NCBI GenBank assembly: GCA_038087875.1
Contig: JAXLNO010003982.1
Span: 124,001-188,000, forward strand
Direction: 5' to 3'
DNA length: 64,000 bases
Source: Malacoraja senta
Taxonomy: Eukaryota
The position numbers and the translations under genes were made by a program. A model generated the notes under the pieces. That model was not told where the DNA came from. It was given only the letters and a program-made list of their open reading frames with translations, and made no database searches. Shown here in pieces: positions 294 to 59,997 of the stretch (position 1 is the stretch's first letter; each line of letters begins with the position of its first letter).

Positions 294-566
294 CCTGTGG
301 AACATTGACTCCCTGCAGCAGAGTTGCATGTTCGATGTAACAGGAGAATTTTGCCACATCTTCTCTATTCAGTTGAATTGTATTCTTCAGCTGGTAAGTC
401 CCATCCCAATTGGGCAACAGATCACTGGATTCAGACTCATGGACCCCCTCACCATCTCTCAGCCACGTTACATCGATGGCCCGTGGCTAGAAGCCTGTGA
501 CAAGGCAGGAGAGTCTCAGTGATTGCGACCCATCACGTTTAATCCCAATAAACACCTCAGGGGTTT
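294..566 (-). CDS. MHC class I-like exon 4 (alpha3, Ig C1-set) with in-frame TAG
   Basis: Acceptor ttgcag|AA, donor G|GTAAGT, 273 nt: ETPEVF...LSCLVTGF*PRAIDVTWLRDG...LLPNWDGTYQL...FSCYIEHATL. The stop replaces Tyr of the GFYP motif. Confidence 0.92.
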
Positions 567-1380
567 CTGCAAGTGTAAGAAGAGTCAGAATCAGTGAAGA
601 CATGAACAAAAGCCTTCAATTGTAAGATCACTGCAACTCACCACTTTCCCAATCAGAGTTTTTTCTCTGGCTGAACTAAGTTTTCAGTCTAGACCCAAAA
701 TGCTGGAATAACTCAGCAGGTCAGGCAGCATTCTGGAGAGAAGGAATGCCCAGAGATGCTATCTGACCCACTGAGTTACACCAACATCTTCTATCTTCAG
801 TGTAAACCATCATCTGCAGTTCTATCTTGCACAAAGTTTACAGCCTTTTCTCTTTTCATTTTGCATTTCTGGCAAAACAACAAAACATTTAGCTTTAATA
901 TCACTGACATGCTCCTTATCTTAGCTCCAGGCTTTAAATGACAGCACAGATGAAAGGGGAATGCAGGCCCAATGGAGGAGTATAACTCACCATTGGGATT
1001 GATACTGTAGACATGATTGCTTCTACCTGTTCATGAATCTCTGCTGAATAATAACACTAAATATTCCAAGAGGGAATGGGAGGAAGAAGTTCTTCAAATA
1101 GAGAACTGTTGGAAATTGAATGTCACCATCCCAAGGAGTAATAGAGGCAAATAGAGAATCTGATTGGGTTTCTGATCAGTTCAGCAACAGACCCTTCAGG
1201 CCACAAGGTCGGTGCTAAACATAAGACCAAGATACATATTCCTCCATTTCCTGAATATCTATATGACTGTGGATAAAGGACACTGGTACAATATTTATCT
1301 TTCACTTGCACTTCCTACCCACTGGTTCCATCTAAGAGGCACGTTGCCAGACAATTTACTGATACCCACGTTGTAGAACA

Positions 1381-1671
1381 GGGTGGCGAAGCGATCGAGC
1401 TACTGCCTTACAGCGCCAGAGACCTGGGTTTGTTACTAACTACGGGTGCTTGTCTTTACAGAGTTTGTACGTTCTCCCTGTGACCTGCGTGGGTTTTATC
1501 CGAGATCTTCGGTTTCCCCTCACACTCGAAAGACGTACAAATTTGTAGGTTAATTGGATTGGTATAAATGCTAATTGTCCCTAGTGTGTGTAGGATAGTG
1601 TTAGTGTGCGGGCATGGCTGCTCGGTGCGGTCTCGGTGGGTTTCCGCGCTGTATCTCTAAACTAAACTAAA
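1381..1671 (+). mobile_element. V-SINE (HE1-like), near full length
   Basis: tRNA-like head with A/B-box remnants, V-core, (TAAAC)n tail. Confidence 0.85.
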
Positions 1672-1770
1672 TAATTACTCAAGTGACAGCCTGAAGTGCA
1701 TGATATTTCCCACCTGATCTATCCAGAGGATATCCTCTGGCCCATCAGTCAGAGTGCCTACGTCGTGTAC

Positions 1771-2045
1771 CTCTCCTCTGTAGTGCTTCTTGTCCACACT
1801 CCAGATATATCCGCAGCCACTTCACACAGTCCTTCTCCAGGAGATCTTTAAAATACTTGTCATGAAGGTGTTGACGTTCCACCGATCTGCTAGCATCTGG
1901 AAATCTGGACGTAGTGCAATCCAGCGCATTCTGTCCTTGTCAAAAGCACAGGCATCCTCCCCATCATAACCCAGTCTGACAAACCCATCAGTGGAATTGT
2001 CACTGTCCACTTCACAGCCGCAGAAACCCTGCACAAAGCAAACAG
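1771..2045 (-). CDS. MHC class I-like exon 3 (alpha2 domain), frameshifted
   Basis: Acceptor cccag|CT, donor G|GTACAC. 275 nt, one short of a phase-1/1 exon of 276 nt. QGFCGCEV...GYDGED...DRW in one frame; LLEKDCVKWLRIYLECGQEALQRR in the next frame. Confidence 0.92.
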
Positions 2046-2331
2046 CTGGGGCTGAGGTAGGGGTGGAGGATTTGTGTTGGGGAGAGTGGATGGAAGGGAG
2101 AGGCAATTTACAAATCAGTTCTCAGCATGGTACAAACAGGCATAACAGAACACAACATGGAGCTGTACAGCACAGGAGCAGGTTTAGCTCAGAGATACAG
2201 CGCGGAAACAGGCCCTTCGGCCCACCGAGTCCGCACCGACCAGTGGTCCCCGCATATTAACACTATCCTACACAGACTACTTTTCTTTTCCAGCTTTCTC
2301 CACTCTACCCCATCACTCTAAATGGTCCTGG

Positions 2332-4566
2332 TGTGGCGGCAGCCTATACACGGGCCACTTATGCTCGAACCCTCGTCAGGAAGTATGAGGGCGGGCACGT
2401 GACGTCATGGGCTAGAGGGAGTGTCCTGGTACATAAGGTCATCTCACCTCGATACCACCAGGTGTTCAACCGGTAGCTGAGCCCGAGGGAACAACCTCGC
2501 TCAGCTTCAGCAACAACATTAATAATAGTTAGCGCACCAACCTAACGTGTCGACCCTTGAATAAACAACTGTTTGAACCGGCCTGACAGGTCTCCTCTTT
2601 ATTCACCACGTTTGGTGCCGCTACATTGGTGACCCCCGACTGTCCAAATTGAAATTTGGATTTCTCCTGAAGCTCGCAGCCTCGGGAGACCTGATGTCTG
2701 CAGCCGACTGCCCAGCCCTGCAGAACTACGCTGCCGCCAACCCGGCCCTGCGGTAATGTATGCCGCTACATCTGGGATGCCGCCGCTTCCCCACCAGCTG
2801 CTGCTCACCGGAGCTAAGAAGCCACGGCTGCCGCCGCTCTCCCGCTCCCGGCAACGGGGCAGGCCGCCTTGTGTGACGGCCACCGAGCTCCCCCGCATGA
2901 CCTGCCCGGAGCCGACTACCGCAGTGGAGAGGTTTTACCTGCCCCCGTTGCCCCACCAGCTGCTGCAGGAGCTGCGAGCGTAGCAGCCTCCTGCCCACAG
3001 CAAACCCGACGGCCCCTGGAGCGGAGAGAGTACCTGCCGCTCTCCCACTCCCGACAACGCACCAGGGCCCGGCCTCACACCGCGAACATGGCTCCAGGCC
3101 CTGCACTGCACCGGGCCTCTCCGCTCCAGGCCGTGCCCCGGCCTCACCTCATCGCGGACCCAGCACTGCAAAGGGCCTCACCGCAGCAACGGCTCCACGT
3201 CCTGCACCGCACCTGGCCCCGCCGGCCGCTGCCGAGGGCCTGGCCACCCGATAGGGCGGTCTTACCTGGGGCGCCTGCCGAAGTCGGCCTTTTTCTCCTC
3301 ACCGGCGTGGACTCCGAAGATCCCTGGGCGCTGGCTGTCTGCCTGTCCAGCCCAGGGATTCAATTGCTGGTGAAGGCCGCCTCAGCCGGCCGGCAAAATG
3401 GCCGCCGCGGCCTCCCGAACAAGCGGCCGACAAACTACAACTAAAATGGCCGCTGAGAAAAGCGAACTCACCTGACCGCCATCCACAGCGCCACCTTCCG
3501 CCCGGATGCCGTCACTGCAGCCTCACCGCCATCCACAGCGCCACCTTCCGCCCGGATGCCGTCACTGCAGCCTCACCGCCGTCCACAGCGCCACCTTCCA
3601 GCTGGATGTCGTCCCTGCATCCTGACTACCGGCAACAGCGCCACTGTCAGGTCGGAGGCTGTCACTGCAACGCTGCACAGCTTTCAAATCCTGCACTATG
3701 AACATTGGACAATTTGAACTTGCACTGATTGCACTGTAATTTGTGGGGTTTTTTTTTTCTGTTCATTTTGTGTTCACTGCATCACCACGCACCACGCTGA
3801 GTTCAGCAATTAGTTTGTTTATTTTATTTCGGGTTTTGTTTTCCCTCAAAGATGACGACGTCTCCCAGCCATTCATGGGGGCCGCATTTTACAGGACACT
3901 CTCCCTTAGCTGGTCGAGGAGATGCGACTGTGTCTCTTCTGTCCGGCGGTTACTGCATCGGTCCCCTCGCACCCCTCGGTACCTCGGGATCGCCCACGCA
4001 GAGCGTTACTGCGCCCGTGGGCCCTCCGTCCCGACCCACGCCCGGGGTGTCCCAGACCCACATGCAGTAGCCGCCCTCGACCATGCTATTCCTTCCGTCC
4101 GGCGGTTTCTGCATCGGTCCCCTCGCACCCCTCGGTACCTCGGGATCGCCCACGCAGAGCGTTACTGCGCCCGTGGGCCCTCCGTCCCGACCCACGCCCG
4201 GGGTGTCCCAGACCCACATGCAGAAGCCGCCCTCGACTATGCTATTCCTTCCTCTGGTTCTGGGGGGGATCCTGTGGCGGCAGCCTATACACGGGCCACT
4301 TATGCTCGAACCCTCGTCAGGAAGTACGAGGGCGGGCACGTGACGTCATGGGCTAGAGGGAGTGTCCTGGTACATAAGGTCATCTCACCTCGAGACCACC
4401 AGGTGTTCAACCGGTAGCTGAGCCCGAGGGAACAACCTCGCTCAGCTTCAGCAACAACATTAATAATAGTTAGCGCACCAACCTAACGTGTCGACCCTTG
4501 AATAAACAACTGTTTGAACCGGCCTGACAGGTCTCCTCTTTATTCACCACGTTTGGTGCCGCTACA
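2332..4566 (+). mobile_element. Non-autonomous LTR retrotransposon (Gypsy-like cis elements; TRIM/LARD-type)
   Basis: 294-bp LTRs at 2332-2625 and 4273-4566 (TGT...ACA, 2 mismatches seen). 4-bp TSD CTGG. PBS TGGTGACCCCCGAC resembles the tRNA-Trp 3' complement. G-rich PPT before the 3' LTR. No recognisable gag/pol in the 1.65-kb interior. Confidence 0.88.
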
Positions 4567-6092
4567 CTGGTCTCATATGTTTTCTGTCCATTTTTCCACA
4601 GCATGCTGCCTGACTCGTTGAGTTCCTCCTGTTTGTTTTAAATTCAGATTGGCAGCATCTGCAGTTTGCTGTGACTCCATCTTAGCACAATGGATGATCA
4701 ATGTGGATTCAGTGAGCAGAAGGGCCGGTTTCCATGCTGTGTGACTCAATGACCCATGGTCTATATACTGAGGGCATGGACTAACCTTAAGTGTTATGGG
4801 GGGAGCTTTACTGTTGCGGATGTAACACTAAAGGAGTTCTGCTGTGTCAGAAGGGTGGAACTCAGATTCTGCACTGTCGTACATAAAGAACAGAGGAAGA
4901 AGTGCATTGTCAGATGGGCAATGCTACAGAGCCAACAGGTCAGTCTGAAGGTTAAGGCAATGCAGATGGGAAGTACATCAAGGCTGTTGCACTGTGTGGG
5001 ATTGCTACACCCTCTGAGGATTGTTGCCAATATTGAGGGGATGCTGGATTAACACAATATTATTACTGAGGGAATACCTCATAGTCACCATCAACCAGCT
5101 TAAATCAAGATCCCATCTCTAGATGATCAGGCTATAAATAAACTAATGGTTTCTCCCTCATTCCAGCCCAACAAAACAGATGATCCAATCCATCCACTTA
5201 TTACTGGTGTTGAATATCAAATGCTTAACCCATAAAGAGACTATCACCAGCCAACTGTTATGACTGTGTGTTCAGCAGTTAGGACACATTAAATATAGAC
5301 GATGGGCCGTGTCTCTATCAAAATGTTATGGAGTAAATGTCTGAAACAGCATCAATGGTGCTGAAGTGAAAAAGGTTGAGAGTTTCTGGTTCCCCTACTG
5401 CCTCAGGAGACTAAGGAAATGCGGCATCTCCAATGACTCTTACAAACTTCTACAAATGTGCCATAGAAAGCATACTGACAGGTTGCATCACAACTTAGTT
5501 TGGAAAGAGTTCTGCCCAAGACCGCTGGAAATTGCAGAGAGGTGGAGATGTAGCACAGTCGATCACACAAACATGATTCCCCACCAGTGAATCCATCTGT
5601 ATTTCAACTGGTTCAGGAAAGCACAGTCGATCACACAAACATGATTCCCCACCAGTGAATCCATCTGTATTTCAACTGGTTCAGGAAAGCAGACAACATA
5701 ATCAAAGATTTGTCCCGTTCTGGTCACTCCTTCCTGCAGAAGGTACGTAAGCATTAAAGCGTGCACCACCAGACTCAGTAACTGTTTCCTCCCCTATGTT
5801 ATCAGGTTTCTGAACAGTCCTCCCTTATGCTAGGGTTCACCTCAACCCCATTGTAGACACTGGACTTTGTCTCTGGCACTGGTACATTACAATGCTGAGA
5901 ACTACATTCTGCACTCTTTGCTCTACCTATTGTACGAGTTTGGTTTGATTGTATTTATGAATAGTTTTCTTTGATGTGATTGACTAACGCAAAAAAAGTG
6001 TATCAGAGAATCATGTGTCAACAATAAAACTAAAACAAAATCCATCTGTGTCATCACTGAGTGTCTACCCCAGGTCCGCTCACGACACTTAC

Positions 6093-6353
6093 TCGAGATA
6101 CCATGTTGCTGTTGGTAGACTATCTCAGCATTTCCTCTGACAATCCCATGAAAACCTGCAACTGTGATGGCCATTGAATCCCAGTGATCATGCGGGAAAG
6201 ACTGGGCCATCCATCGCTGTCTGGGAACAGCCCGCTCTAGTGTGCTGTCAAAATATGCTATCTGGACGTCATCCAGCATTGCTACCATACTGTACTCAGG
6301 CAGCTCATTCAATCCATGGTTCAACAGGTAGTAAAATGCAAGATGGTGTAAAT
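6093..6353 (-). CDS. MHC class I-like exon 2 (alpha1 domain)
   Basis: Acceptor ttgcag|AT, donor A|GTAAGT, 261 nt, open frame: DLHHLAFYYLLNHGLNELPEYSMVAMLDDVQIAYFDSTLERAVPRQRWM...HWD...QQQHGIS. Matches the class I alpha1 PE(F/Y)...LDD.QI.YFDS...VPR..WM pattern. Confidence 0.92.
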
Positions 6354-6543
6354 CTGCAATGCATAAACAAAAATAAGTATGATTGTATCATTCACTGAAA
6401 ATAACTAAGTTATTAATGCTAAAACTGATAACAATACAATAACTTTGAATAAGGGAGTCACAAGGACCTGCAGATGCAAGTGCTGGATGAACTCAGTGGG
6501 GCAGGCAGCATCAATGATCAGGTGACAATTTGGGTCAGGAGCC

Positions 6544-6850
6544 TTTAGTTTAGTTTTTAGCTTAGAGATACAGCATGGAAACAGGCCCTTCGTGCGAGTC
6601 CACACTGACCAGCAACCCCCACACAATAACACTATCCTACACACACTAGGGACAATTTACATTCTAGACCAAGCCAATTAACCTACAAACCTATACGTCT
6701 TTGGAATGTGGGAAGAATCCGAACATCTCGGGAAAAACCCACACGGTAATGGGGAGAATGGACAAACTCCGTACAGACAGCATCCGTAATCAGGATCCAA
6801 CCTGGGTCTATGGTGCTGTAATCGAGTAAGTCTACCGCTGCACCACTGAG
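6544..6850 (-). mobile_element. V-SINE (HE1-like)
   Basis: Reverse complement of the same SINE consensus. Confidence 0.82.
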
Positions 6851-9800
6851 CCTTCTTCAAGAGTTGGCATGATGGGCTCTGATACCTACTCCACCAATTA
6901 TGGTCGAGGTATTGAATGATCCTACTGGATTGTTTCCCATCTTCAAAGATCTATTATTGTCTATCATGTCGATAGGTTCTACTAGTTACAATATTCCAAA
7001 ATTTGAAGAATATTTTATTATATTAAGAAACTGGACAATGTCAAGGAGACTTTATAGAATCATAGAGAGGTAAAGTCAAAGAGTCATACAGCAGGGAATC
7101 AGGGCCTATGGCTCAACTTGCCACACCAACCAACATGCCTCATCTACACTACCTGTATTTCATCAGTACATAAGTTCTAGGAGAATAATTAGGCCATTCA
7201 GCCCATCGGCCATTCAATCATGGCTGAGCTATCTCTCCCTATCAACCACATTCTCCTGCCTGCACCCCATAACCCTTGAAACCCATACTGATCAAGAATC
7301 TGTTAATCTCCACCTGAGAAATATCCATTGATGTGGGCTCTACAGCTGACTGAGGCCCATATCCTTATAAGCCTATCCTATCCATGTACCTGATTAAATG
7401 ATTCTTAAATGTCGTGACAGTACGCGCCTGAACTACCTTCTCCGGCAGTTCATTCAGTACACCCACCACCCTTTGTGTAACAATGCTATGCCTCAGGTTC
7501 CTATTAAATCATTCCCCCCTCATCTTAAACTTATGTTCACTGGGTACAGCACATAAAAGGCCCTTTAGCCCACCAAGTTCGTGGTGACCATCAAACACCT
7601 ATTTATACCTGTGGTACGCTAACCCTTTTAATATTTGCCAATCTCCCATTAACACCTCCCTCATCCCCTCCACCAATTCTAATACATATGCATGACCAAT
7701 TCACACTGGCCAATTTACCTTTCAGCCCGGCATTTTGGGGACGTGCGGGGAAACTGGAATAACCATAGCAAACACACGTTTGCAGGGGGAAAAAAAAGCC
7801 AGGTTGTAAGAGATCAGGATTGAGTCCAGGTCCTCATAGGCAGCTGCAACACAGCTCATAGAGATGGGGGGGGGGGTGGTGGAGACTGAGATAAACAGGG
7901 CCTAAATTGAAACTCGACACAAAATACTGGAGTAACTCAGTGGGTCAGGCAGCATCTCCGGAGAAAAGGAAAAGGTGACGTTTCGTGTCGAGACCCTTCT
8001 TCAGAATGAGAGTCAGGGGACAGAGAACCGAGAGATATGACAAAGTACAATGAAATATATGCACCCCCGACTCTGTCTGATGCAGTGTCTTGACCTGAAA
8101 CTCCACCTATTCCTTTTCTCCAGCGATGCTGCCTGACTTGCTGAGTTACTCCAGCCTTTTGTAGCTATCTTCGGTGTAAACCAGCATCTGCATCAGCAGT
8201 CAGAAGAAGGGTCTCGACCCGAAACGTCACCCATACCTTCTCTCTAGGGATGCTGCCTGTGCCGCTGAGTTACTCCAGCTTTATTGTCTATCTTCGGTTT
8301 AAATCAGCTTCTGCAGTTCCTTCTTACACATCTGCACTTCCTTCCTACACTTGTGTCAACTGAAACATCACCTAACCATGTTCTCCAGACATACTGCCTG
8401 ACCTGCTGAATTACTCCAGTATTTTATGTGTATTAACCAGCATGTGCAGTTTCTTGTTTCCACATGCATAAGCAGTATTTGTTCTGTGATAAAGATTACA
8501 TGCAGCACACCAGACAGTGTCAAAGTTCATGTGTTTAAGTGAAGTGAGAAGGGGCCCCGAGGGCAGAGTTAGAAGTGTCTGTTTCAGTGTTACCAGGAGA
8601 AACATAAGACGGCTAAGAGTGGAATACAGTAACGATAAAATCTATGTGGCTTCCCAAAACACTCCACAGCCGAGGATTTTTGTTTTATATGTTATTATTT
8701 CAACATGGCCATCACCATTATATGGTTTCGGCCCGAAACGTTGCCTATTTCCTTCGCTCCATAGATGCTGCTGCACCCGCTGACTTTCTCCAGCATTTTT
8801 GTGTACCTTCGATTTTCCAGCATCTGCAGTTCCTTCTTTAACACCATTATATTTACTTTCATTTGATAACAATGGGATGAAACTTTCAGGACGAGTAGGT
8901 TTGTAATCTCCAAGCCTTGATGAATGTCAGAATAGTTAGAAAGGTACCATTGTGTGGGAAGAAATTGCTCATCAGATTCCCATTCAATCTTTCCCCCCTC
9001 AATGTAAACCTATGTCCTCTGGTTCTCGATTCTGTAATCTGTTGAATATGTTGCCCACTTGAAAATTTCCAGATTGAGATTGATAGATTTTTGTTCATTA
9101 AGGGTGTAATGGGCTGGAGTTCGGCCACAATGTCTGTGCCGAACATGATGTCAAGTTCAACTAAACTCTTCATGCTTGTAGATGATTCATATCCCTCAAT
9201 TCCCTGCATATCCACGTGCCTATCCTCAAGCTTCTTAAATCTCATTATCGTCTTCTGGGGAAGTGGTGATGGGGTAATGGATAGGGTCTGCAGGACAGGA
9301 AGCATGCAACAAACAACAAGATGGCAACAACATTAACACAACATTGATTGGTCATTTAATGCAGGCTGAATTTTACCATCATGTGGGTGTCTAACACCAG
9401 CTGAGGAAATCTTGGAGAGGTGGAACACCTACTAATGCAGAAGTCACTTCTTTATTGAAAGTGCACATCACCTGAATTCTGTCTGAGGCATTAGTGCAAG
9501 GACAGATTGGACAAACATGGATTGTTTTCTCTTGTATACTGGAGGTTGAAGGGAGACCTGATGAAAGTGCACAACATGGTGAGAGGCACAGACAGAGTGG
9601 ACAGCCAGAACCTTTTTCCCAGGGTGGAAATGTTGAAGACCAGAGAACATCACTTTAAGGTTGGAGAAGCAATGTTCAAAGGAGATGAGCGGAGCAAGTT
9701 GTTTTATGTGGAGGGTGGTGGACATCTGTAACGCGCTGCCAGTGGTGGTTGTGGTGATGGTGGCAGATATAACAGTTACATTTCAGAGGCTTTTAGATAG

Positions 9801-10284
9801 GTACGTAGATAGGCAGGGAATGGCCGGATACAGATCACATACAGGTAGAGGAGATTAGTTTAGTTTGTTCGGCACAGACATTGTGGGCCGAAGGTAGACA
9901 AAATGCTGAGGTAACAGCGGGTCAGGCAGCATCTCTGGAGAAAAGGAACGGGTGACGTTTCGGGTCGAGACCCTTCTTCAGACTGAAGGACTGAAGGACC
10001 TGCTCCTGTGCTGTATTGTACTATGTTCTATGTTCATTATTTACATGTATTCAGTTCTTCTGTTCAATGGATTGCCAAGGTAACCATAGTATATATAACT
10101 TCCCACAGGAGCCTTTACAACTAAGGAAAGACCGTTACCCAAAATTATTAATACATTCAATTCAATCATTCAATTAATACATCCAAGACAATGAACCCAG
10201 GGCAAACACAGGCACTGTGCAACAGTAAATATAATCAGTTTTGTTGTTTCCTCAAAGTTCACAGGTTGAAGCAGTATTGCTTAC

Positions 10285-10336
10285 CAGAGGAGACAGTGGC
10301 CACACCGTAAGTGTTCAGTAAGGTAAAAAGAAGCAT
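10285..10336 (-). CDS. MHC class I-like exon 1 (leader peptide MLLFTLLNTYGVATVSS)
   Basis: ATG at 10336, 17 codons plus 1 nt, then donor G|GTAAGC. The G joins AT of the alpha1 exon to give Asp in frame. Confidence 0.8.
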
Positions 10337-10474
10337 GTTTAACAGCCGCCCACAGCACTATTTAACCAGCAGAGTAAATGCAGCAACAGTAACATAATCT
10401 CTTGTACGTTTTTAACAGAACTCTGGTGTGAAGGTAATTATTGGTCCATGTATACACAAACCTGATAACCAGAT

Positions 10475-26666: not shown

Positions 26667-27117
26667 TTGTATTGTATCCAGGGTAAGGGGAGTATGAGGC
26701 CCAGGGCAGTTTACTGTTCTGGATGTCAGATGTATTGTATCCAGGGTAAGGGGAGTATGAGGGCCAGGGCAGTTTGTTGTTCTGGATGTCAGATGTATTG
26801 TATCCAGGGTAAGGGGAGTATGAGGGCCAGGGCAGTTTACTGTTCCGGATGTCAGATGTAATGTATCCAGGGTAAGGGGAGTATGAGGCCCAGGGCAGTT
26901 TACTGTTCTGGATGTCAGATGTATTGTATCCAGGGTAAGGGGAATATGAGGGCCAGGGCAGTTTGTTGTTCTGGATGTCAGATGTATTGTATCCAGGGTA
27001 AGGGGATTATGAGGGCCAGGGCAGTTTACTGTTCCGGATGTCAGATGTAATGTATCCAGGGTAAGGGGAGTATGAGGGCCAGGGCAGTTTACTGTTCTGG
27101 ATGTCAGATGTGGGAAG
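26667..27117 (+). repeat. 7 x 63-bp tandem of the ORF1 start region
   Basis: TATCCAGGGTAAG anchors every 63 bp from 26675 to 27053. Confidence 0.92.
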
Positions 27118-28007
27118 TCATGGAGTCTGATAGCCCTCCAGACGTCCACATCTGCGCCAGGTGTATCGAGATGGGGCTCCTAATGGACCGTATTAGGAAC
27201 CTGGAGCAGCAGCTCGATGACCTCCGTCTGGTCAGGGAGAGCGAGGAAGTCATCGAGAGGAGTTACAGGGATGTGGTCACTCCAACACCACAGGAGGCAG
27301 GCAAGTGGATCACGGTTGGGAGAGGCAAGGGGCACAGGCAGGGACTAGAGAGTACCCCGGTGGCTGTACACCTTGACAATAAGTACTCCTGTTTGAGCAC
27401 TGTTGGGGTGGACAGCCTACCTGGGGGTAGCGACAGCGGCCGGGCCTCCGGTATAGAGACCGGTCCTGTTGCTCAGAAGGGTAAGGAAAAGAAGAGGAGG
27501 GCAATATTAATAGGGGACTCTATAGTTAGGGGGTCAGACAGGCGATTCTGTGGACGCAGTCGGGAGACCCGGATGGTAGTTTGCCTCCCTGGTGCCAGAG
27601 TCTGTGATGTGTCCCAACGTGTCCAAGACATCCTGAAAGGGCAGGGAGAGGAGCCCGAGGTCGTGATACATATAGGTACCAATGACATAGGTAAAAAAAG
27701 AGAAGAGGTCCTGAAAGGAGAATTTAGGGAGTTAGGAGGGGAGTTAAAGAGAAGGACAGCAAAGGTAACAATCTCGGGATTACTGCCTGTACCACGCGAC
27801 AGTGAGAGTAGGAATGGAGCGAGGTGGAGGATAAATGCGTGGCTGAAGGACTGGTGCAGAAGGCAGGGATTCAAATTTCTGGATCATTGGGACTTCTTTT
27901 GTGGAAGGTTCGACCTGTACAAAAAGGATGGGTTGCACTTGAACCTGAGGGGGACCGATATCCTGGCGGGGAGATCTGCAAAGGCTACTGGGGAGACTTT
28001 AAACTAG
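27072..28007 (+). CDS. CR1 ORF1p (zinc finger, coiled coil, SGNH esterase)
   Basis: CxxC...CxxC at the N-terminus; GDSIVRG, PGA, HIGTND and DGLHLN esterase blocks. Confidence 0.92.
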   Translation: MRARAVYCSGCQMWEVMESDSPPDVHICARCIEMGLLMDRIRNLEQQLDDLRLVRESEEVIERSYRDVVTPTPQEAGKWITVGRGKGHRQGLESTPVAVHLDNKYSCLSTVGVDSLPGGSDSGRASGIETGPVAQKGKEKKRRAILIGDSIVRGSDRRFCGRSRETRMVVCLPGARVCDVSQRVQDILKGQGEEPEVVIHIGTNDIGKKREEVLKGEFRELGGELKRRTAKVTISGLLPVPRDSESRNGARWRINAWLKDWCRRQGFKFLDHWDFFCGRFDLYKKDGLHLNLRGTDILAGRSAKATGETLN

Positions 28008-31000
28008 AATGGTTGGGGGGAGGGACTCAAATAGAGAATGCTATTAGACAGTGTGTGAGGCAGGAGGCAGAGAAGGAAAGCACTCAGACCCAACATGTAG
28101 GGGGGAAAGAAGAAAACAATAATAAACAGAGAATAAGAGGTGGTGGGGTTCTTAAATGGGTGAGCAGAGAAACAGAGGGGTGTAAAATGCGGGCGGAAGC
28201 AATAGGTAGCAAGGTGAAAGGTAAAAGTGGCAGGCAGACAAATCCAGGGCAAAAATCAAAAAGAGCCACTTTTCAACATAATTGTATAAGGGGTAAGAGC
28301 GTTGTAAAAACAAGCCTGAAGGCTTTGTGTCTCAATGCAAGGAGCATTCGTAATAAGGTGGATGAGTTGAACGTGCAGATAGCAATTAATGATTATGATA
28401 TAGTTGGGATCACGGAGACATGGCTCCAAGGTGACCAAGGCTGGGAGCTGAACATCCAGGGATATTCAATATTCAGGAGGGATAGAGAGAAAGGAAAAGG
28501 AGGTGGGGTGGCGTTGCTGGTTAGAGAGGAGATTAACGCAGTGGAAAGGAAGGACATTAGCTTGGAGGATGTGGAATCGGTATGGGTAGAGCTGCGAAAC
28601 ACTAAGGGGCAGAAAACGCTGGTGGGCGTTGTGTACAGGCCACCTAGCAGTAGTAGTGAAGTTGGGGATGGCATCAAACAGGAAATTAGAAATGCGTGCA
28701 ACAAAGGCAAAACAGTTATAATGGGTGACTTCAATCTACATATAGATTGGGTGAATCAAATTGGCAGGGGTGCTGAGGAAGAGGATTTCTTGGAATGTAT
28801 GAGGGATAGTTATCTAAACCAACATGTAGAGGAACCAACGAGAGAGCAGGCTATTCTAGACTGGGTATTGAGTAATGAGGAAGGGTTAGTTAGCAGACTT
28901 GTTGTGCGTGCCCCCTTGGGCAAGAGTGATCATAATATGGTTGAGTTCTTCATTAGGATGGAGAGTGACATTGTTAATTCAGAAACAACGGTTCTGAACT
29001 TAAAGAAAGGTAACTTTGAGGGTATGAGACGTGAATTGGCCAAGATTGACTGGCAATTAGTTCTAAAAGGGTTGACGGTGGATATGCAATGGAAGGCATT
29101 TAAAGACTGCATGGATGAACTACAAAAATTGTTCATCCCAGTTTGGCAAAAGAATAAATCAAGGAAGGTAGTGCATCCGTGGATAACAAGGGAAATCAGG
29201 GATAGTATCAAAGCAAAAGATGATGCGTACAAATTAGCCAGAAAAAGCAGCATACCAGAGGACTGGGAGAAATTCAGAGACCAGCAGAGGAGGACAAAGG
29301 GCTTAATTAGGAAAGGGAAAATAGATTATGAAAGGAAACTGGCAGGGAACATAAAAACTGACTGCAAAAGTTTTTATAGATATGTGAAGAGAAAGAGATT
29401 AGTTAAATCAAATGTAGGTCCCTTGCAGTCAGAAACAGGTGAATTGATCATGGGGAACAAGGATATGGCAGACCAATTGAATAACTACTTTGGTTCCGTC
29501 TTCACTAAGGAAGACAAATAATCTGCCGGAAATAGCAGGGGGCCGCGGGTCAAAGGAGATGGAGGAACTGAGTGAAATCCAGGTTAGTCGGGAAGTGGTG
29601 TTGGGTAAATTGAATGGATTAAAGGCCGATAAATCACCAGGGCCAGATAGGCTGCATCCCAGAGTACTTAAGGAAGTAGCTCCAGAAATAGTGGATGCAT
29701 TAGTGATAATTTTTCAAAACTCTTTAGATTCTGGAGTAGTTCCTGAGGATTGGAGGGTAGCAAACGTAACCCCACTTTTTAAGAAGGGAGGGAGAGAGAA
29801 AACGGGGAATTACAGACCAGTTAGTCTAACATCGGTAGTGGGGAAACTGCTAGAGTCAGTTATTAAAGATGGGATAGCAGCACATTTGGAAAGTGGTGAA
29901 ATCATTGGACAAAGTCAGCATGGATTTACGAAAGGTAAATCGTGTCTGACGAATCTTATAGAATTTTTCGAGGATGTAACTAGTAGAGTGGATAGGGGAG
30001 AACCAGTGGATGTGTTGTATCTGGACTTTCAGAAGGCTTTCGACAAGGTACCACATAAGAGATTAGGATACAAACTTAAATCACACGGTATTGGGGGTTC
30101 AGTATTGATGTGGATAGAGAACTGGCTGGCAAACAGGAAGCAAAGAGTAGGAGTAAACGGGTCCTTTTCACAATGGCAGGCAGTGACTAGTGGGGTACCA
30201 CAAGGCTCAGTGCTGGGACCCCAGCTATTTACAATTTATATTAATGATCTGGACGAGGGAATTGAAAGCAACATCTCCAAGTTTGCGGATGACACTAAGC
30301 TGGGGGGCAGTGTTAGCTGTGAGGAGGATGCTAGGAGACTGCAAGGTGACTTGGATAGGCTGGGTGAGTGGGCAAATGTTTGGCAGATGCAGTATAATGT
30401 GGATAAATGTGAGGTTATCCACTTTGGTAGCAAAAACGGGAAGGCAGACTATTATCTAAATGGTGGCCGATTAGGAAATGGGGAGATGCAGCGAGACCTG
30501 GGTGTCATGGTACACCAGTCATTGAAAGTAGGCATGCAGGTGCAGCAGGCAGTGAAGAAAGCGAATGGTATGTTGGCCTTCATAGCAAGAGGATTTGAGT
30601 ATAGGAGCAGTGAGGTTCTACTGCAGTTGTACAGGGTCTTGGTGAGACCACACCTGGAGTATTGCGTACAGTTTTGGTCTCCAAATCTGAGGAAGGACAT
30701 TATAGCCATAGAGGGAGTGCAGAGAAGGTTCACCAGACTGATTCCTGGGATGTCAGGACTTTCATATGAAGAAAGACTGGATAGACTTGGCTTATACTCG
30801 CTAGAATTTAGGAGATTGAGAGGGGATCTTATAGAAACGTACAAGATTCTTATGGGGTTGGACAGGCTAGATGCAGGAAGATTGTTCCCGATGTTGGGGA
30901 AGTCCAGGACAAGGGGTCACAGCTTAAGGATAAGGGGAAAATCCTTTAAGACCGAGATGAGGAAAAACTTTTTCACACAGAGAGTGGTGAATCTCTGGAA

Positions 31001-31229
31001 CTCTCTGCCACAGAGGGTAGTTGAGGCCAGTTCATTGGCTATATTTAAGAGGGAATTAGATGTGGCCCTTGTGGCTAAAGGGATCAGGGGGTATGGAGAA
31101 AAGGCAGGTACGGGATACTGAGTTGGATGATCAGCCATGATCGTATTGAATGGCGGTGCAGGCTCGAAGGGCCGAATGGCCTACTCCTGCACCTAATTTC
31201 TATGTATCTATGTATCTATGGGTTAGCAA

Positions 31230-44503: not shown

Positions 44504-44677
44504 NNNNNNNNNNNNNNNNNNNNNNNNNNNNNNNNNNNNNNNNNNNNNNNNNNNNNNNNNNNNNNNNNNNNNNNNNNNNNNNNNNNNNNNNNNNNNNNNN
44601 NNNNNNNNNNNNNNNNNNNNNNNNNNNNNNNNNNNNNNNNNNNNNNNNNNNNNNNNNNNNNNNNNNNNNNNNNNNNN
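44504..44677. other. Assembly gap (174 N)
   Basis: Run of N. Confidence 1.
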
Positions 44678-45434
44678 CCTCACGGCGCCAGAGACCCCAG
44701 TTCAATCCCGACCACGGGTGCTGTCTGTGCGGTGTTTGCACGTTCTCTCCCCGTGACCTGCGTGGGTTTTCTCCGGGCGCTCCGTGTCCTCCCACACTCC
44801 AAAGATGTGCGGGTTTGTAGGTTAATTGGTTTCTGGTAAAGATTGTAAATTGTCCCCCTGTGTGTGTGTGTGTGTAGGATAGTGTTAGTGTGCGGGGATC
44901 GCTGGTCAGCACAGACTTGATGGGCTGAAGGGCCTGTTTCCGTGCTGTATCTCTAAACTAAACTAGTGTGTGAACGGACTATCGCTGGTCAGCACGGACT
45001 TGATGGGCCGAAGGGCCTGTTTCCGCGCTTTATCTAAACTAAACTGGACTAAACTAGTTGAAGAACATAATTCAAACATCAAGGTGACCACAAAGTGTAA
45101 AAGATGTTTTCATTTTATTTGGAAAGGCCACTAAAGAAAACAGAGAAAGAGTTGAGTATAGGAGCAATGAGGTCCTTCAGCAGTTGTACAGAGACCTGGT
45201 GAGACCACACCTGGAGTATTGTGTGCAGTTTTGGCCTGTTCGCCTTCATAACAAGAGGAGTTGAGTACAGGAGCAAAGAGGTCCTTCTACAGTTGTACAG
45301 AGCCCTGGTGACGTGTCTCTCCGCCAATGGGGACGTCCCATCAGTCAGAGGGCCGGATGTCCCGCCCACGCCGTCCCCTCTATGACGTCATCGTTGCATT
45401 ACACGTATGGGAGCTCCGCTATAAGATCTTTGAT

Positions 45435-54858: not shown

Positions 54859-57800
54859 TCAGTATCCCGTACCTGCCTTTTCTCCATACCCCCTGATCCC
54901 TTTAGCCACAAGGGCCACATCTAATTCCCTCTTAAATATAGCCAATGAACTGGCCTCAACTACCCTCTGTGGCAGAGAGTTCCAGAGATTCACCACTCTC
55001 TGTGTGAAAAAGTTTTTCCTCATCTCGGTCTTAAAGGATTTTCCCCTTATCCTTAAGCTGTGACCCCTTGTCCTGGACTTCCCCAACATCGGGAACAATC
55101 TTCCTGCATCTAGCCTGTCCAACCCCATAAGAATCTTGTACGTTTCTATAAGATCCCCTCTCAATCTCCTAAATTCTAGCGAGTATAAGCCAAGTCTATC
55201 CAGTCTTTCTTCATATGAAAGTCCTGACATCCCAGGAATCAGTCTGGTGAACCTTCTCTGCACTCCCTCTATGGCTATAATGTCCTTCCTCAGATTTGGA
55301 GACCAAAACTGTACGCAAAACTCCAGGTGTGGTCTCACCAAGACCCTGTACAACTGCAGTAGAACCTCACTGCTCCTATACTCAAATCCTCTTGCTATGA
55401 AGGCCAACATACCATTCGCTTTCTTCACTGCCTGCTGCACCTGCATGCCTACTTTCAATGACTGGTGTACCATGACACCCAGGTCTCGCTGCATCTCCCC
55501 ATTTCCTAATCGGCCACCATTTAGATAATAGTCTGCCTTCCCGTTTTTGCTACCAAAGTGGATAACCTCACATTTATCCACATTATACTGCATCTGCCAA
55601 ACATTTGCCCACTCACCCAGCCTATCCAAGTCACCTTGCAGTCTCCTAGCATCCTCCTCACAGCTAACACTGCCCCCCAGCTTAGTGTCATCCGCAAACT
55701 TGGAGATGTTGCTTTCAATTCCCTCGTCCAGATCATTAATATAAATTGTAAATAGCTGGGGTCCCAGCACTGAGCCTTGTGGTACCCCACTAGTCACTGC
55801 CTGCCATTGTGAAAAGGACCCATTTACTCCTACTCTTTGCTTCCTGTTTGCCAGCCAGTTCTCTATCCACATCAATACTGAACCCCCAATACCGTGTGAT
55901 TTAAGTTTGTATCCTAATCTCTTATGTGGTACCTTGTCGAAAGCCTTCTGAAAGTCCAGATACAACACATCCACTGGTTCTCCCCTATCCACTCTACTAG
56001 TTACATCCTCGAAAAATTCTATAAGATTCGTCAGACACGATTTACCTTTCGTAAATCCATGCTGACTTTGTCCAATGATTTCACCACTTTCCAAATGTGC
56101 TGCTATCCCATCTTTAATAACTGACTCTAGCAGTTTCCCCACTACCGATGTTAGACTAACTGGTCTGTAATTCCCCGTTTTCTCTCTCCCTCCCTTCTTA
56201 AAAAGTGGGGTTACGTTTGCTACCCTCCAATCCTCAGGAACTACTCCAGAATCTAAAGAGTTTTGAAAAATTATCACTAATGCATCCACTATTTCTGGAG
56301 CTACTTCCTTAAGTACTCTGGGATGCAGCCTATCTGGCCCTGGTGATTTATCGGCCTTTAATCCATTCAATTTATCCAACACCACTTCCCGACTAACCTG
56401 GATTTCACTCAGTTCCTCCATCTCCTTTGACCCGCGGCCCCCTGCTATTTCCGGCAGATTATTTATGTCTTCCTTAGTGAAGACGGAACCAAAGTAGTTA
56501 TTCAATTGGTCTGCCATATCCTTGTTCCCCATGATCAATTCACCTGTTTCTGACTGCAAGGGACCTACATTTGATTTAACTAATCTCTTTCTCTTCACAT
56601 ATCTATAAAAACTTTTGCAGTCAGTTTTTATGTTCCCTGCCAGTTTCCTTTCATAATCTATTTTCCCTTTCCTAATTAAGCCCTTTGTCCTCCTCTGCTG
56701 GTCTCTGAATTTCTCCCAGTCCTCTGGTATGCTGCTTTTTCTGGCTAATTTGTACGCATCATCTTTTGCTTTGATACTATCCCTGATTTCCCTTGTTATC
56801 CACGGATGCACTACCTTCCTTGATTTATTCTTTTGCCAAACTGGGATGAACAATTTTTGTAGTTCATCCATGCAGTCTTTAAATGCCTTCCATTGCATAT
56901 CCACCGTCAACCCTTTTAGAACTAATTGCCAGTCAATCTTGGCCAATTCATGTCTCATACCCTCAAAGTTACCTTTCTTTAAGTTCAGAACCGTTGTTTC
57001 TGAATTAACAATGTCACTCTCCATCCTAATGAAGAACTCAACCATATTATGATCACTCTTGCCCAAGGGGGCACGCACAACAAGTCTGCTAACTAACCCT
57101 TCCTCATTACTCAATACCCAGTCTAGAATAGCCTGCTCTCTCGTTGGTTCCTCTACATGTTGGTTTAGATAACTATCCCTCATACATTCCAAGAAATCCT
57201 CTTCCTCAGCACCCCTGCCAATTTGATTCACCCAATCTATATGTAGATTGAAGTCACCCATTATAACTGTTTTGCCTTTGTTGCACGCATTTCTAATTTC
57301 CTGTTTGATGCCATCCCCAACTTCACTACTACTGCTAGGTGGCCTGTACACAACGCCCACCAGCGTTTTCTGCCCCTTAGTGTTTCGCAGCTCTACCCAT
57401 ACCGATTCCACATCCTCCAAGCTAATGTCCTTCCTTTCCACTGCGTTAATCTCCTCTCTAACCAGCAACGCCACCCCACCTCCTTTTCCTTTCTCTCTAT
57501 CCCTCCTGAATATTGAATATCCCTGGATGTTCAGCTCCCAGCCTTGGTCACCTTGGAGCCATGTCTCCGTGATCCCAACTATATCATAATCATTGATTGC
57601 TATCTGCACGTTCAACTCATCCACCTTATTACGAATGCTCCTTGCATTGAGACACAAAGCCTTCAGACTTGTTTTTACAACGCTCTTACCCCTTATACAA
57701 TTATGTTGAAAAGTGGCTCTTTTTGATTTTTGTCCTGGATTTGTCTGCCTGCCACTTTTACCTTTCACCTTGCTACCTATTGCTTCCGCCCGCATTTTAC

Positions 57801-58158
57801 ACCCCTCTGTTTCTCTGCTCACCCATTTAAGAACCTCACCACCTCTTATTCTCTGTTTATTATTGTTTTCTTCTTTCCCCCCTACATGTTGGGTCTGAGT
57901 GCTTTCCTTCTCTGCCTCCTGCCTCACACACTGTCTAATAGCATTCTCTATTTGAGTCCCTCCCCCCAACCATTCTAGTTTAAAGTCTCCCCAGTAGCCT
58001 TTGCAGATCTCCCCGCCAGGATATCGGTCCCCCTCAGGTTCAAGTGCAACCCATCCTTTTTGTACAGGTCGAACCTTCCACAAAAGAAGTCCCAATGATC
58101 CAGAAATTTGAATCCCTGCCTTCTGCACCAGTCCTTCAGCCACGCATTTATCCTCCAC
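54859..58158 (-). CDS. CR1 ORF2p (APE endonuclease plus reverse transcriptase); true start uncertain
   Basis: LNARSIRNK, GITETW, YRPP, GDFN and SDH (APE); [26 protein letters not shown] and FADDTK (RT). Open for 1099 codons. Confidence 0.93.
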   Translation of the reverse strand: MEDKCVAEGLVQKAGIQISGSLGLLLWKVRPVQKGWVALEPEGDRYPGGEICKGYWGDFKLEWLGGGTQIENAIRQCVRQEAEKESTQTQHVGGKEENNNKQRIRGGEVLKWVSRETEGCKMRAEAIGSKVKGKSGRQTNPGQKSKRATFQHNCIRGKSVVKTSLKALCLNARSIRNKVDELNVQIAINDYDIVGITETWLQGDQGWELNIQGYSIFRRDREKGKGGGVALLVREEINAVERKDISLEDVESVWVELRNTKGQKTLVGVVYRPPSSSSEVGDGIKQEIRNACNKGKTVIMGDFNLHIDWVNQIGRGAEEEDFLECMRDSYLNQHVEEPTREQAILDWVLSNEEGLVSRLVVRAPLGKSDHNMVEFFIRMESDIVNSETTVLNLKKGNFEGMRHELAKIDWQLVLKGLTVDMQWKAFKDCMDELQKLFIPVWQKNKSRKVVHPWITREIRDSIKAKDDAYKLARKSSIPEDWEKFRDQQRRTKGLIRKGKIDYERKLAGNIKTDCKSFYRYVKRKRLVKSNVGPLQSETGELIMGNKDMADQLNNYFGSVFTKEDINNLPEIAGGRGSKEMEELSEIQVSREVVLDKLNGLKADKSPGPDRLHPRVLKEVAPEIVDALVIIFQNSLDSGVVPEDWRVANVTPLFKKGGREKTGNYRPVSLTSVVGKLLESVIKDGIAAHLESGEIIGQSQHGFTKGKSCLTNLIEFFEDVTSRVDRGEPVDVLYLDFQKAFDKVPHKRLGYKLKSHGIGGSVLMWIENWLANRKQRVGVNGSFSQWQAVTSGVPQGSVLGPQLFTIYINDLDEGIESNISKFADDTKLGGSVSCEEDARRLQGDLDRLGEWANVWQMQYNVDKCEVIHFGSKNGKADYYLNGGRLGNGEMQRDLGVMVHQSLKVGMQVQQAVKKANGMLAFIARGFEYRSSEVLLQLYRVLVRPHLEFCVQFWSPNLRKDIIAIEGVQRRFTRLIPGMSGLSYEERLDRLGLYSLEFRRLRGDLIETYKILMGLDRLDAGRLFPMLGKSRTRGHSLRIRGKSFKTEMRKNFFTQRVVNLWNSLPQRVVEASSLAIFKRELDVALVAKGIRGYGEKAGTGY

Positions 58159-58910
58159 CTCGCTCCATTCCTACTCTCACTGTCGCGTGGTACAGGCAGT
58201 AATCCCGAGATTGTTACCTTTGCTGTCCTTCTCTTTAACTCCCCTCCTAACTCCCTAAATTCTCCTTTCAGGACCTCTTCTCTTTTTTTACCTATGTCAT
58301 TGGTACCTATATGTATCACGACCTCGGGCTCCTCTCCCTGCCCTTTCAGGATGTCTTGGACACGTTGGGACACATCACAGACCCTGGCACCAGGGAGGCA
58401 AACTACCATCCGGGTCTCCCGACTGCGTCCACAGAATCGCCTGTCTGACCCCCTAACTATAGAGTCCCCTATTAATATTGCCCTCCTCTTCTTTTCCTTA
58501 CCCTTCTGAGCAACAGGACCGGTCTCTATACCGGAGGCCCGGCCGCTGTCGCTACCCCCAGGTAGGCTGTCCACCCCAACAGTGCTCAAACAGGAGTACT
58601 TATTGTCAAGGTGTACAGCCACCGGGGTACTCTCTAGTCCCTGCCTGTGCCCCTTGCCTCTCCCAACCGTGATCCACTTGCCTGCCTCCTGTGGTGTTGG
58701 AGTGACCACATCCCTGTAACTCCTCTCAATGACTTCCTCGCTCTCCCTGACCAGACGGAGGTCATCGAGCTGCTGCTCCAGGTTCCTAATACGGTCCATT
58801 AGGAGCCCCATCTCGATACACCTGGCGCAGATGTGGACGTCTGGAGGGCTAACAGACTCCATGACTTCCCACATCTGACATCCAGAACAGTAAACTGCCC
58901 TGGCCGTCAT
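57975..58910 (-). CDS. CR1 ORF1p (esterase type), 311 aa
   Basis: ATG of MTARAVYC at 58910; differs from copy 1 at about 2 residues. Confidence 0.92.
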   Translation of the reverse strand: MTARAVYCSGCQMWEVMESVSPPDVHICARCIEMGLLMDRIRNLEQQLDDLRLVRESEEVIERSYRDVVTPTPQEAGKWITVGRGKGHRQGLESTPVAVHLDNKYSCLSTVGVDSLPGGSDSGRASGIETGPVAQKGKEKKRRAILIGDSIVRGSDRRFCGRSRETRMVVCLPGARVCDVSQRVQDILKGQGEEPEVVIHIGTNDIGKKREEVLKGEFRELGGELKRRTAKVTISGLLPVPRDSESRNGARWRINAWLKDWCRRQGFKFLDHWDFFCGRFDLYKKDGLHLNLRGTDILAGRSAKATGETLN

Positions 58911-59997
58911 ACTCCCCTTACCCTGGATAGAATATAAAACAAACTGATAGAATACAAAACAAACTGCTACAATACAAAACAAACTGCTACAATACAAAAC
59001 AAACTGCTACAATACAAAACAAACTGCTACAATACAAAACAAACTGCTACAATACAGTACAATCAGCAGGGATCTGACTCCCAATCAGCTGCTCTCTCTT
59101 ATCTGCGTCCACCAATCAGCGGCTTCCTCAAACCCACTTGTTTTTGAAGTGGAACGTTGCCGATTTGGGTTCCTTTTTAAGTCCTACCGCTCGGTTGTAG
59201 CTCCTCCCTCAGCGACCTCTCCAACGGCTTTCGGACCTCTGTTAGGAACAAGCCCCCGCGCTCCTTTTTAAGTCCTACCGCTCGGTTGTAGCTCCTCCCT
59301 CAGCGACCTCTCCAACGGCTTTCGGACCTCTGTAAGGAACAAGCCCCCGCGCTCCTTTTTAAGTCCTACCGCTCGGTTGTAGCTCCTCCCTCAGCGACCT
59401 CTCCAACGGCTTTCGGACCTCTGTAAGGAACAAGCCCCCGCGCTCCTTTTTAAGTCCTACCGCTCGGTTGTAGCTCCTCCCTCAGCGACCTCTCCAACGG
59501 CTTTCGGACCTCTGTAAGGAACAAGCCCCCGCGCTCCTTTTTAAGTCCTACCGCTCGGTTGTAGCTCCTCCCTCAGCGACCTCTCCAACGGCTTTCGGAC
59601 CTCTGTAAGGAACAAGCCCCCGCGCTCCTTTTTAAGTCCTACCGCTCGGTTGTAGCTCCTCCCTCAGCGATCTCTCCAACGGCTTTCGGACCTCTGAACA
59701 CCAGTCATGGTACACCAGTCATTGAAAGTAGGCATGCAGGTGCAGCAGGCAGTGAACAAAGCAAATGGTATGTTAGCTTTCATAGCAAAAGGATTTGAGT
59801 ATAGGAGCAGGGAGGTTCTACTGCAGTTGTACAGGTTCTTGGTGAGACCACACCTGGAGTATTGCATACAGTTTTGGTCTCCAAATCTGAGGAAGGACAT
59901 TATAGCCATAGAGGGAGTGCAGAGAAGGTTCACCAGACTGATTCCTGGGATGTCAGGCCTTTCATATGAAGAAAGACTGGATAGCCTTGGTTTACAC

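Follow-up and report, generated by a model that had tools for sequence, protein, structure and literature searches.

In the present work, we have analyzed a 64,000-nucleotide stretch of the skate Malacoraja senta (contig JAXLNO010003982.1, positions 124,001 to 188,000; referred to below, at its full length, as the window), whose minus strand carries, between positions 10336 and 294, part of a gene related to class I of the major histocompatibility complex (MHC). Our analyses lead us to conclude, with a probability that we place at about 75%, that the window contains the four 5′-most exons of a skate copy of an ancient nonclassical class I lineage that is sister to the UGA lineage, that the intact form of the protein is a putative presenter of a lipid-like ligand, and that this particular copy has been disabled. 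Sharks and rays are the oldest living animals that possess an MHC, and the structures of two of their nonclassical class I molecules (viz. UFA and UGA) suggest that class I-like display of lipids is as old as display of peptides. The lineage described here suggests itself for the next studies of ligands and structure, because it is the nearest relative of UGA, is kept in the 13 species in which it was found, surpasses the other clades compared in both the hydrophobicity and the conservation of its groove, and is without the sorting tail of UGA. What the window itself contributes is no more than a broken copy, whose value lies in the evidence that skates duplicate and lose this gene, and in the caution that one of its two apparent lesions is missing from the reads.

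Gene structure and place of the lineage among class I genes

A preliminary description of this DNA, made from its letters alone, had proposed a four-exon class I structure, and the splice sites and Pfam domains place the four exons on the minus strand where that description had put them. Exon 1 (10336-10285) starts with an ATG at 10336, ends in phase 1 with a G directly before the donor GTAAGC, and codes for the 17-residue leader MLLFTLLNTYGVATVSS; this leader has an exact match in the little skate (Leucoraja erinacea) at positions 100-150 of locus L001, and is nearly the same as the start, MLLITLLNVYCVPTVSS, of the sawshark orthologue (P0163). The alpha1 exon (6353-6102; 252 nt) is intact and in phase 1 at both ends, with acceptor ATTGCAG and donor GTATCT. 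The alpha2 exon (2045-1771), which encodes the cysteine pair C101-C164 and a conserved N-S-T glycosylation sequon, measures 275 nt in the assembly, 1 base under the frame-keeping length of 276 nt that the alpha2 exon of L001 has. The exon for alpha3, a C1-set immunoglobulin domain (566-294; 273 nt), lies between acceptor CTTGCAG and donor GTAAGT. AG acceptors and GT donors, all in phase 1, flank each of the alpha1, alpha2 and alpha3 exons. The Pfam family MHC_I matches alpha1 and both halves of alpha2 (24.5, 34.6, and 17.4 bits) and C1-set matches alpha3 (36.4 bits), so that MHC_I is followed by C1-set with each domain on its own phase-1 exon, the arrangement of the MHC class I superfamily. 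The transmembrane and tail exons lie outside the window and are expected before base 294; the residues of the little skate protein P0001 past 283 have no match in the window, and 12 class I queries identified no further class I exons in the 64 kb.

A search with the alpha1 exon identified P0001 (scaffold JAMYXN010000384.1), an intact little skate protein with 94% protein identity to the window in alpha1. Over 264 columns, the window protein is 92% identical to P0001, and its identity to the sawfish orthologue (LOC127585976) is 77%. Both of these orthologues share the exon structure of the window gene, and both are intact at the sites of its two apparent lesions (TAC for the Tyr of the alpha3 motif GFYP, and ATG AAC AAG in alpha2). 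A search with P0001, which returned one representative per species, gave rays (Pristis, Mobula, and Hypanus) at 66–72% identity and eight shark species at 54–60%, followed by a drop to 33–36%. The lineage has been found in 13 ray and shark species in all, and it is already in public annotation, where NCBI labels its members "MR1-like." No published name for the clade was found in the literature covered, and no database match carries an author-given lineage name.

In a maximum-likelihood tree of 71 rows, in which few classical sequences were included, the window and the little skate sequence form a pair (support 100/100) inside a batoid subclade (98/96), and the whole lineage (100/100) is sister to UGA (97/84). 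The UGA clade has a support of 100/99, and UFA joins the group of UGA and the window clade weakly (80/63). The classical-like rows group with teleost U sequences, apart from the window clade. The nonclassical status that had been assigned to the gene agrees with this tree, since the window nests in no classical-like clade and belongs to an elasmobranch clade of its own. The shape of the tree within the lineage mirrors the species tree, and the lineage is hence older than the split between sharks and rays. The window gene shares with classical class I (UAA-type) its domain order, phase-1 exons, the C101-C164 pair, W133, W147, Y171, and a C1-set alpha3; unlike classical class I, it keeps two of eight anchors for the peptide termini, its lineage has a conserved rather than a variable groove, and it falls in a separate clade.

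The names of the two nearest lineages were taken from the titles of solved structures in the PDB (9CH4, "shark nonclassical MHC class I, UGA," and 8GM8, "UFA"). The best solved match is 9CH4 (E 3e-60), which by estimates from the alignment is ~45–50% identical to a carpet-shark member of the window clade and near 90% identical to a zebra shark (Stegostoma) sequence of the sister clade. This structure was not listed in the first search with the alpha2 exon, because the alpha2 half is more diverged; the full-length alignment covers alpha2. Orthology with UGA was rejected, as the identity is 37–43% and both clades are present in the same species (Stegostoma, Pristis, and Leucoraja); the UGA genes and those of the window lineage are therefore paralogues that split before sharks and rays diverged. 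The two share the motifs AGFHG and KYFKxLLEKDC, and both are found in sharks and in rays. Orthology with UFA was also rejected, since 8GM8 matches a protein of a third clade (P0020) at E 4e-90 and P0001 at 3e-32, and the window is 30% identical to it. UFA resembles the window lineage in being an MHC-linked nonclassical class I molecule without the anchors, and it differs in its very divergent alpha2, which is without the usual cysteine pair context, and in ending in a hydrophobic segment with no cytoplasmic tail. These comparisons with solved chains separate the window lineage from both UFA and UGA, in line with the earlier proposal of an unassigned chondrichthyan lineage. Of the other named lineages, UDA reportedly keeps eight of nine anchors, UEA is said to be shark-only and multicopy, and UCA is said to occur in dogfish only; as far as these descriptions go, all three are probably distinct from the window clade.

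The genomic setting is best seen in the sawfish, whose orthologue (NC_067438.1:13956125-13977896) has its place in the interval from BRD2/B2M to COL11A2/RXRB/HSD17B8, with three further MHC-Ib genes after it. The first of these three, P0244, is the next annotated neighbor of the orthologue, starting ~42 kb downstream, and it has been confirmed as a member of the UGA clade, making the two lineages neighbors in the sawfish MHC. The orthologue itself has been labeled MHC-Ib (Verissimo, 2023, supplementary file 1).

Groove, membrane tail and candidate ligand

Numbers of human leukocyte antigen (HLA) residues were placed on the alignment by means of conserved motifs, and 45 groove positions were mapped on it by hand. 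The window protein has F7, H59, Q84, L143, R146, W147, L159, and Y171, and no N86 sequon, in agreement with the earlier reading by eye, and the hydrophobic strings SMVAM, AITVAGFHGIV, and FVQGF are found in it. Of the eight peptide-terminus anchors checked (Y7, Y59, R/Y84, T143, K146, W147, Y159, and Y171), the protein retains only W147 and Y171, and the residues at these sites are shared by all 13 members of the clade, apart from L147 in three sharks. UGA differs from the lineage in retaining Y7, Y59, and the N86 sequon.

The mean Kyte-Doolittle hydropathy of the groove positions is 1.23 in the window lineage (range 0.95–1.50), compared with 0.43 in UGA, 0.45 in UFA, 1.01 in one CD1b, and 0.05–0.21 in the other class I clades (viz. 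a 29-row shark clade without the alpha2 cysteine pair, the classical-like rows, and Callorhinchus), and the hydrophobic groove proposed earlier is thus found by alignment to top the clades compared. Charged residues or His occupy ~4 of the 45 positions in the lineage, 6.5 in UGA, 4 in UFA, and ~9–11 in the other groups. Within the lineage, 25 of the 45 groove columns are invariant vs. 54 of the other 131 columns of alpha1-alpha2, and, as judged from these alignments, the groove is more conserved than the rest of the two domains. Its consensus agrees with UGA at 24 of the 45 positions; the inner face of the alpha2 helix is shared in full (M152, Y155, F156, L159, L160, and D163).

UFA and UGA reportedly bind lipids of the CD1d type (PMC12562908; for UGA through a personal communication). 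From the chemistry of the groove and the kinship with UGA, we infer that the intact members of the lineage probably present ligands other than peptides. The intact protein would pair with beta2-microglobulin, would hold one conserved hydrophobic, lipid-like ligand, and would be loaded without the endosomal recycling signal that is found in UGA tails.

The tails are relevant to the last of these steps. The intact orthologues are type I membrane proteins in which the leader is followed by the alpha1-alpha2 groove, the C1-set alpha3, a transmembrane segment, and finally a long hydrophilic tail; the last two elements are present in all 14 of the lineage members, and no YxxPhi motif was found in these 14 tails (the window itself is without tail exons). 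The tails of UGA, in contrast, are short, and in most species (7 of 13 readable sequences) YxxPhi stands at their end. A more specific version of the proposal, which we offer tentatively and regard as rather less than even in its chances, is that the clade is a third, unnamed member of the elasmobranch "CD1-like" group beside UFA and UGA, with a groove more hydrophobic and more conserved than theirs and without an endosomal sorting tail, that it would use a non-endosomal route to display a single fixed lipid on the surface of cells, and that skates duplicate and lose it, the window copy being recently dead. Similarity to the CD1 molecules themselves, which present lipids in tetrapods, consists of the hydrophobic groove (1.23 vs. 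1.01, for one CD1b and by a crude mapping), the loss of the anchors, and the same overall fold (Z 24–27). In distinction from CD1, the window lineage keeps the class I cysteine pair and class I lengths and is without a YxxPhi sorting tail, and there is no sign of orthology, the one CD1b being 24% identical to the sawfish orthologue and 28% identical to the window protein.

An AlphaFold2 model of the sawfish orthologue (predicted local distance difference test score 91.6) has 9CH4 as its closest structure (template modeling, or TM, score 0.93, Z 29.5). Beyond UGA, the fold search returns CD1, HFE, ZAG, FcRn, and classical class I at a tie (Z 24–27), and the fold is hence silent on the ligand. 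It is rather unlikely, in our estimation, that the intact members, like HFE, FcRn, or ZAG, present no antigen and serve another function, their groove being narrowed or occupied. HFE (Z 26.2), ZAG (25.9), and FcRn (25.2) do fit the model as well as CD1, the strict conservation of the lineage would suit a fixed partner, and the long hydrophilic tail, with its repeats rich in Q, R, and E, is unlike the tails of presenting molecules. The small residues of the groove floor (G97, A123, and C99), together with the inward-facing M, V, F, I, and L on both helices, argue instead for an open hydrophobic cavity, and the position of the gene in the MHC beside UGA also speaks against this explanation.

That the intact members present specialized hydrophobic peptides, in the manner of HLA-E or Qa-1, rather than lipids, is an explanation which we consider unlikely. 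A conserved groove is also a feature of monomorphic peptide presenters; W147, Y171, and the C101-C164 pair are kept, the change from K146 to R is conservative, the lengths are class I-like, and the fold fits classical class I as well as it fits CD1. Against this stand the clade-wide loss of anchors for both peptide termini (F7, H59, Q84, L143, and L159), the scarcity of charged residues and His in the groove relative to UGA and to the clades other than UFA and UGA, and the lipids reported for the sister lineage UGA (PMC12562908, personal communication).

The name under which the lineage has been annotated raises a further explanation, viz. that it is the counterpart of MR1 and presents small metabolites of the vitamin B type. 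Outside sharks, the top sequence matches of both alpha2 and the complete protein are MR1 chains, which also rank high in Foldseek. The identity is ~31%, the TM scores (0.79–0.84) are under those of chicken and shark classical class I, and the hydrophobic groove is without the polar and aromatic cradle of MR1. In addition, the Schiff-base Lys43 of MR1 aligns, in an ungapped stretch (fdstleravprqrw vs. ydsvtrqkeprapw), with an Ala in the window and with A, T, I, or C across the clade. An MR1-like function was rejected on this K43A difference, and we hold the MR1 explanation as a whole to be scarcely credible.

Two observations on cysteines concern the same domains. Rays, and not sharks, have two additional cysteines that occur together, at 124 (EDACAF) and 174 (YLECGQ), encoded in the alpha2 exon of the window at 1924-1926 and 1795-1797; this co-occurrence suggests that rays have an additional disulfide of their own. 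At floor position 99, every member of the lineage retains an unpaired Cys.

Lesions and state of the window copy

The preliminary description had reported two lesions in the gene, of which one is borne out and the other is not. The first is an in-frame TAG (489-487, minus strand) that replaces the Tyr codon of the GFYP motif of alpha3; the little skate has TAC at this position, so that the change is one of TAC to TAG, and it would end the protein inside alpha3, ahead of the membrane anchor. The second is the deletion of 1 nt from the alpha2 exon between 1859 and 1860 (minus strand), where the assembly reads ATG-AC-AAG and the orthologues read ATG AAC AAG (alignment to L001 and to a second little skate locus, L002). 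Both sites were checked with contigs from two public runs (X1 and X2), both of one organism, which were aligned to positions 250-2100. Contigs of X1 (258-638) and X2 (328-469 and 440-630) agree with the TAG at 487-489 letter for letter, and no alternative letter with a share of at least 10% is present there in the contigs of either run. The organism does carry the stop codon. In the contigs, the frameshift is not seen: they have the missing base as an extra T behind 1859 (depth 160 of 160 in X1, and 1717 of 2663 in X2), which restores ATG AAC AAG, the reading of the little skate, on the coding strand. The alpha2 frameshift is therefore either a fault of the assembly or a second lesion, of rare occurrence. 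At 931 and 938 the contigs have letters other than those of the assembly, and they are hence not a mere copy of it.

Because the TAG is confirmed in public contigs and the frameshift is not, the window copy is either a null allele or a young pseudogene, and it cannot make the full protein. We regard as very unlikely the contrary explanation, in which the locus is a working gene that expresses a full-length protein and both lesions are assembly faults or rare alleles. The absence of the frameshift from the public contigs is in its favor, as are the intact leader and splice sites, and the better conservation of exons than of introns, the equal terminal branches and the ratio of nonsynonymous to synonymous substitution rates (dN/dS) that are described below. 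Against it are the presence of the TAG, with no alternative letter at the above share, in contigs of two samples, and the differences at 931 and 938, which show that these contigs are not simple copies of the assembly.

The loss of the window copy appears to be recent. Its exons are 94.5–96.8% identical to those of L001 at the nucleotide level (alpha1 96.8%) vs. 87–92% for the introns, with the two loci collinear; the pairwise comparison with the little skate, with 33 substitutions, gives a dN/dS of 0.48; and in the tree, the window and the little skate have terminal branches of equal length (0.044 and 0.039). Taken together, these three observations point to a recent loss.

Several minor variants were also seen in the contigs of X1 and X2, with depth ratios of ~20:80 at 1876 and at 1098-1099, and with another variant at 76–89% at 688. 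These ratios are unlike those of a simple heterozygote, and they suggest that several (>2) near-identical copies or haplotypes are present in the sequenced animals.

UDA, UFA, and UGA have been described as single-copy nonclassical genes (2025 review, PMC12562908). The little skate has two copies of the present gene, the intact L001 and the broken L002. The latter (L002:11723-14216; scaffold JAMYXN010000412.1) has a TGA at the codon for Cys164 of alpha2 and a 3-nt deletion in alpha3, an alpha1 exon was not found in it, and its NCBI model, a protein of 263 aa (P0164), is read through intron sequence. In 2366 columns that the three loci share, the difference from the window is 6.6% for L001 and 8.8% for L002, and L001 and L002 differ at 10.1%; L001 is thus nearer to the window, and the duplication preceded the separation of the window and L001. 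In the sevengill shark Heptranchias perlo, the cluster of P0155 contains 11 near-identical proteins of the lineage (at least 90% identity) on seven contigs, which represent either a local expansion or many haplotigs, and the lineage is not single copy everywhere.

A number of points weigh against the reading that we favor, viz. a disabled skate copy of an ancient, putatively lipid-presenting lineage. The groove values come from a manual assignment of positions on the alignment and not from coordinates, with HLA numbers that depend on conserved motifs, and the tie in the fold search includes CD1, HFE, ZAG, FcRn, and classical class I. The designation "single copy" may fail in skates; the little skate has two copies, and the sevengill shark has ~11 proteins. 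X1 and X2 are two samples of one study, which may come from one animal, or from the animal that was assembled. The dN/dS of 0.48 and the equal terminal branches give no sign of a long decay, and, among the runs that are on record as RNA, none contains the alpha1 exon.

Further features of the window

Upstream of the leader, an additional ATG opens an 18-codon open reading frame (ORF) on the minus strand (10339-10395), with product MLLLLHLLCWLNSAVGGC, that stops 2 nt before the main ATG. The product resembles a signal peptide. The little skate locus has AAG in place of the upstream ATG, so that this ORF is peculiar to the window copy, whose translation it may dampen.

Intron 2 contains a GC-rich insert of ~2.2 kb (2333-4566; GC 0.595), in which there are tandem repeats of 50 bp (four units, 3471-3669) and of 156 bp (two units, 3936-4252). 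The insert has no counterpart in either little skate copy. An assembly gap of 174 N is located at 44504-44677, and a weak alpha2-like tblastn match beside it (44770-44868, E 0.087) was taken as chance, since no other class I query matches there. The rest of the window, from 11 to 64 kb, contains only ORFs of the transposon type (reverse-transcriptase- or transposase-like, as judged by eye). Among them are two near-identical long interspersed nuclear elements in inverted orientation (27072-31121, plus strand, and 54859-58997, minus strand), which have ORF1-like and endonuclease/reverse-transcriptase ORFs. The minus-strand element keeps the whole of its ORF2 (1099 aa), and it therefore looks to have been active recently.

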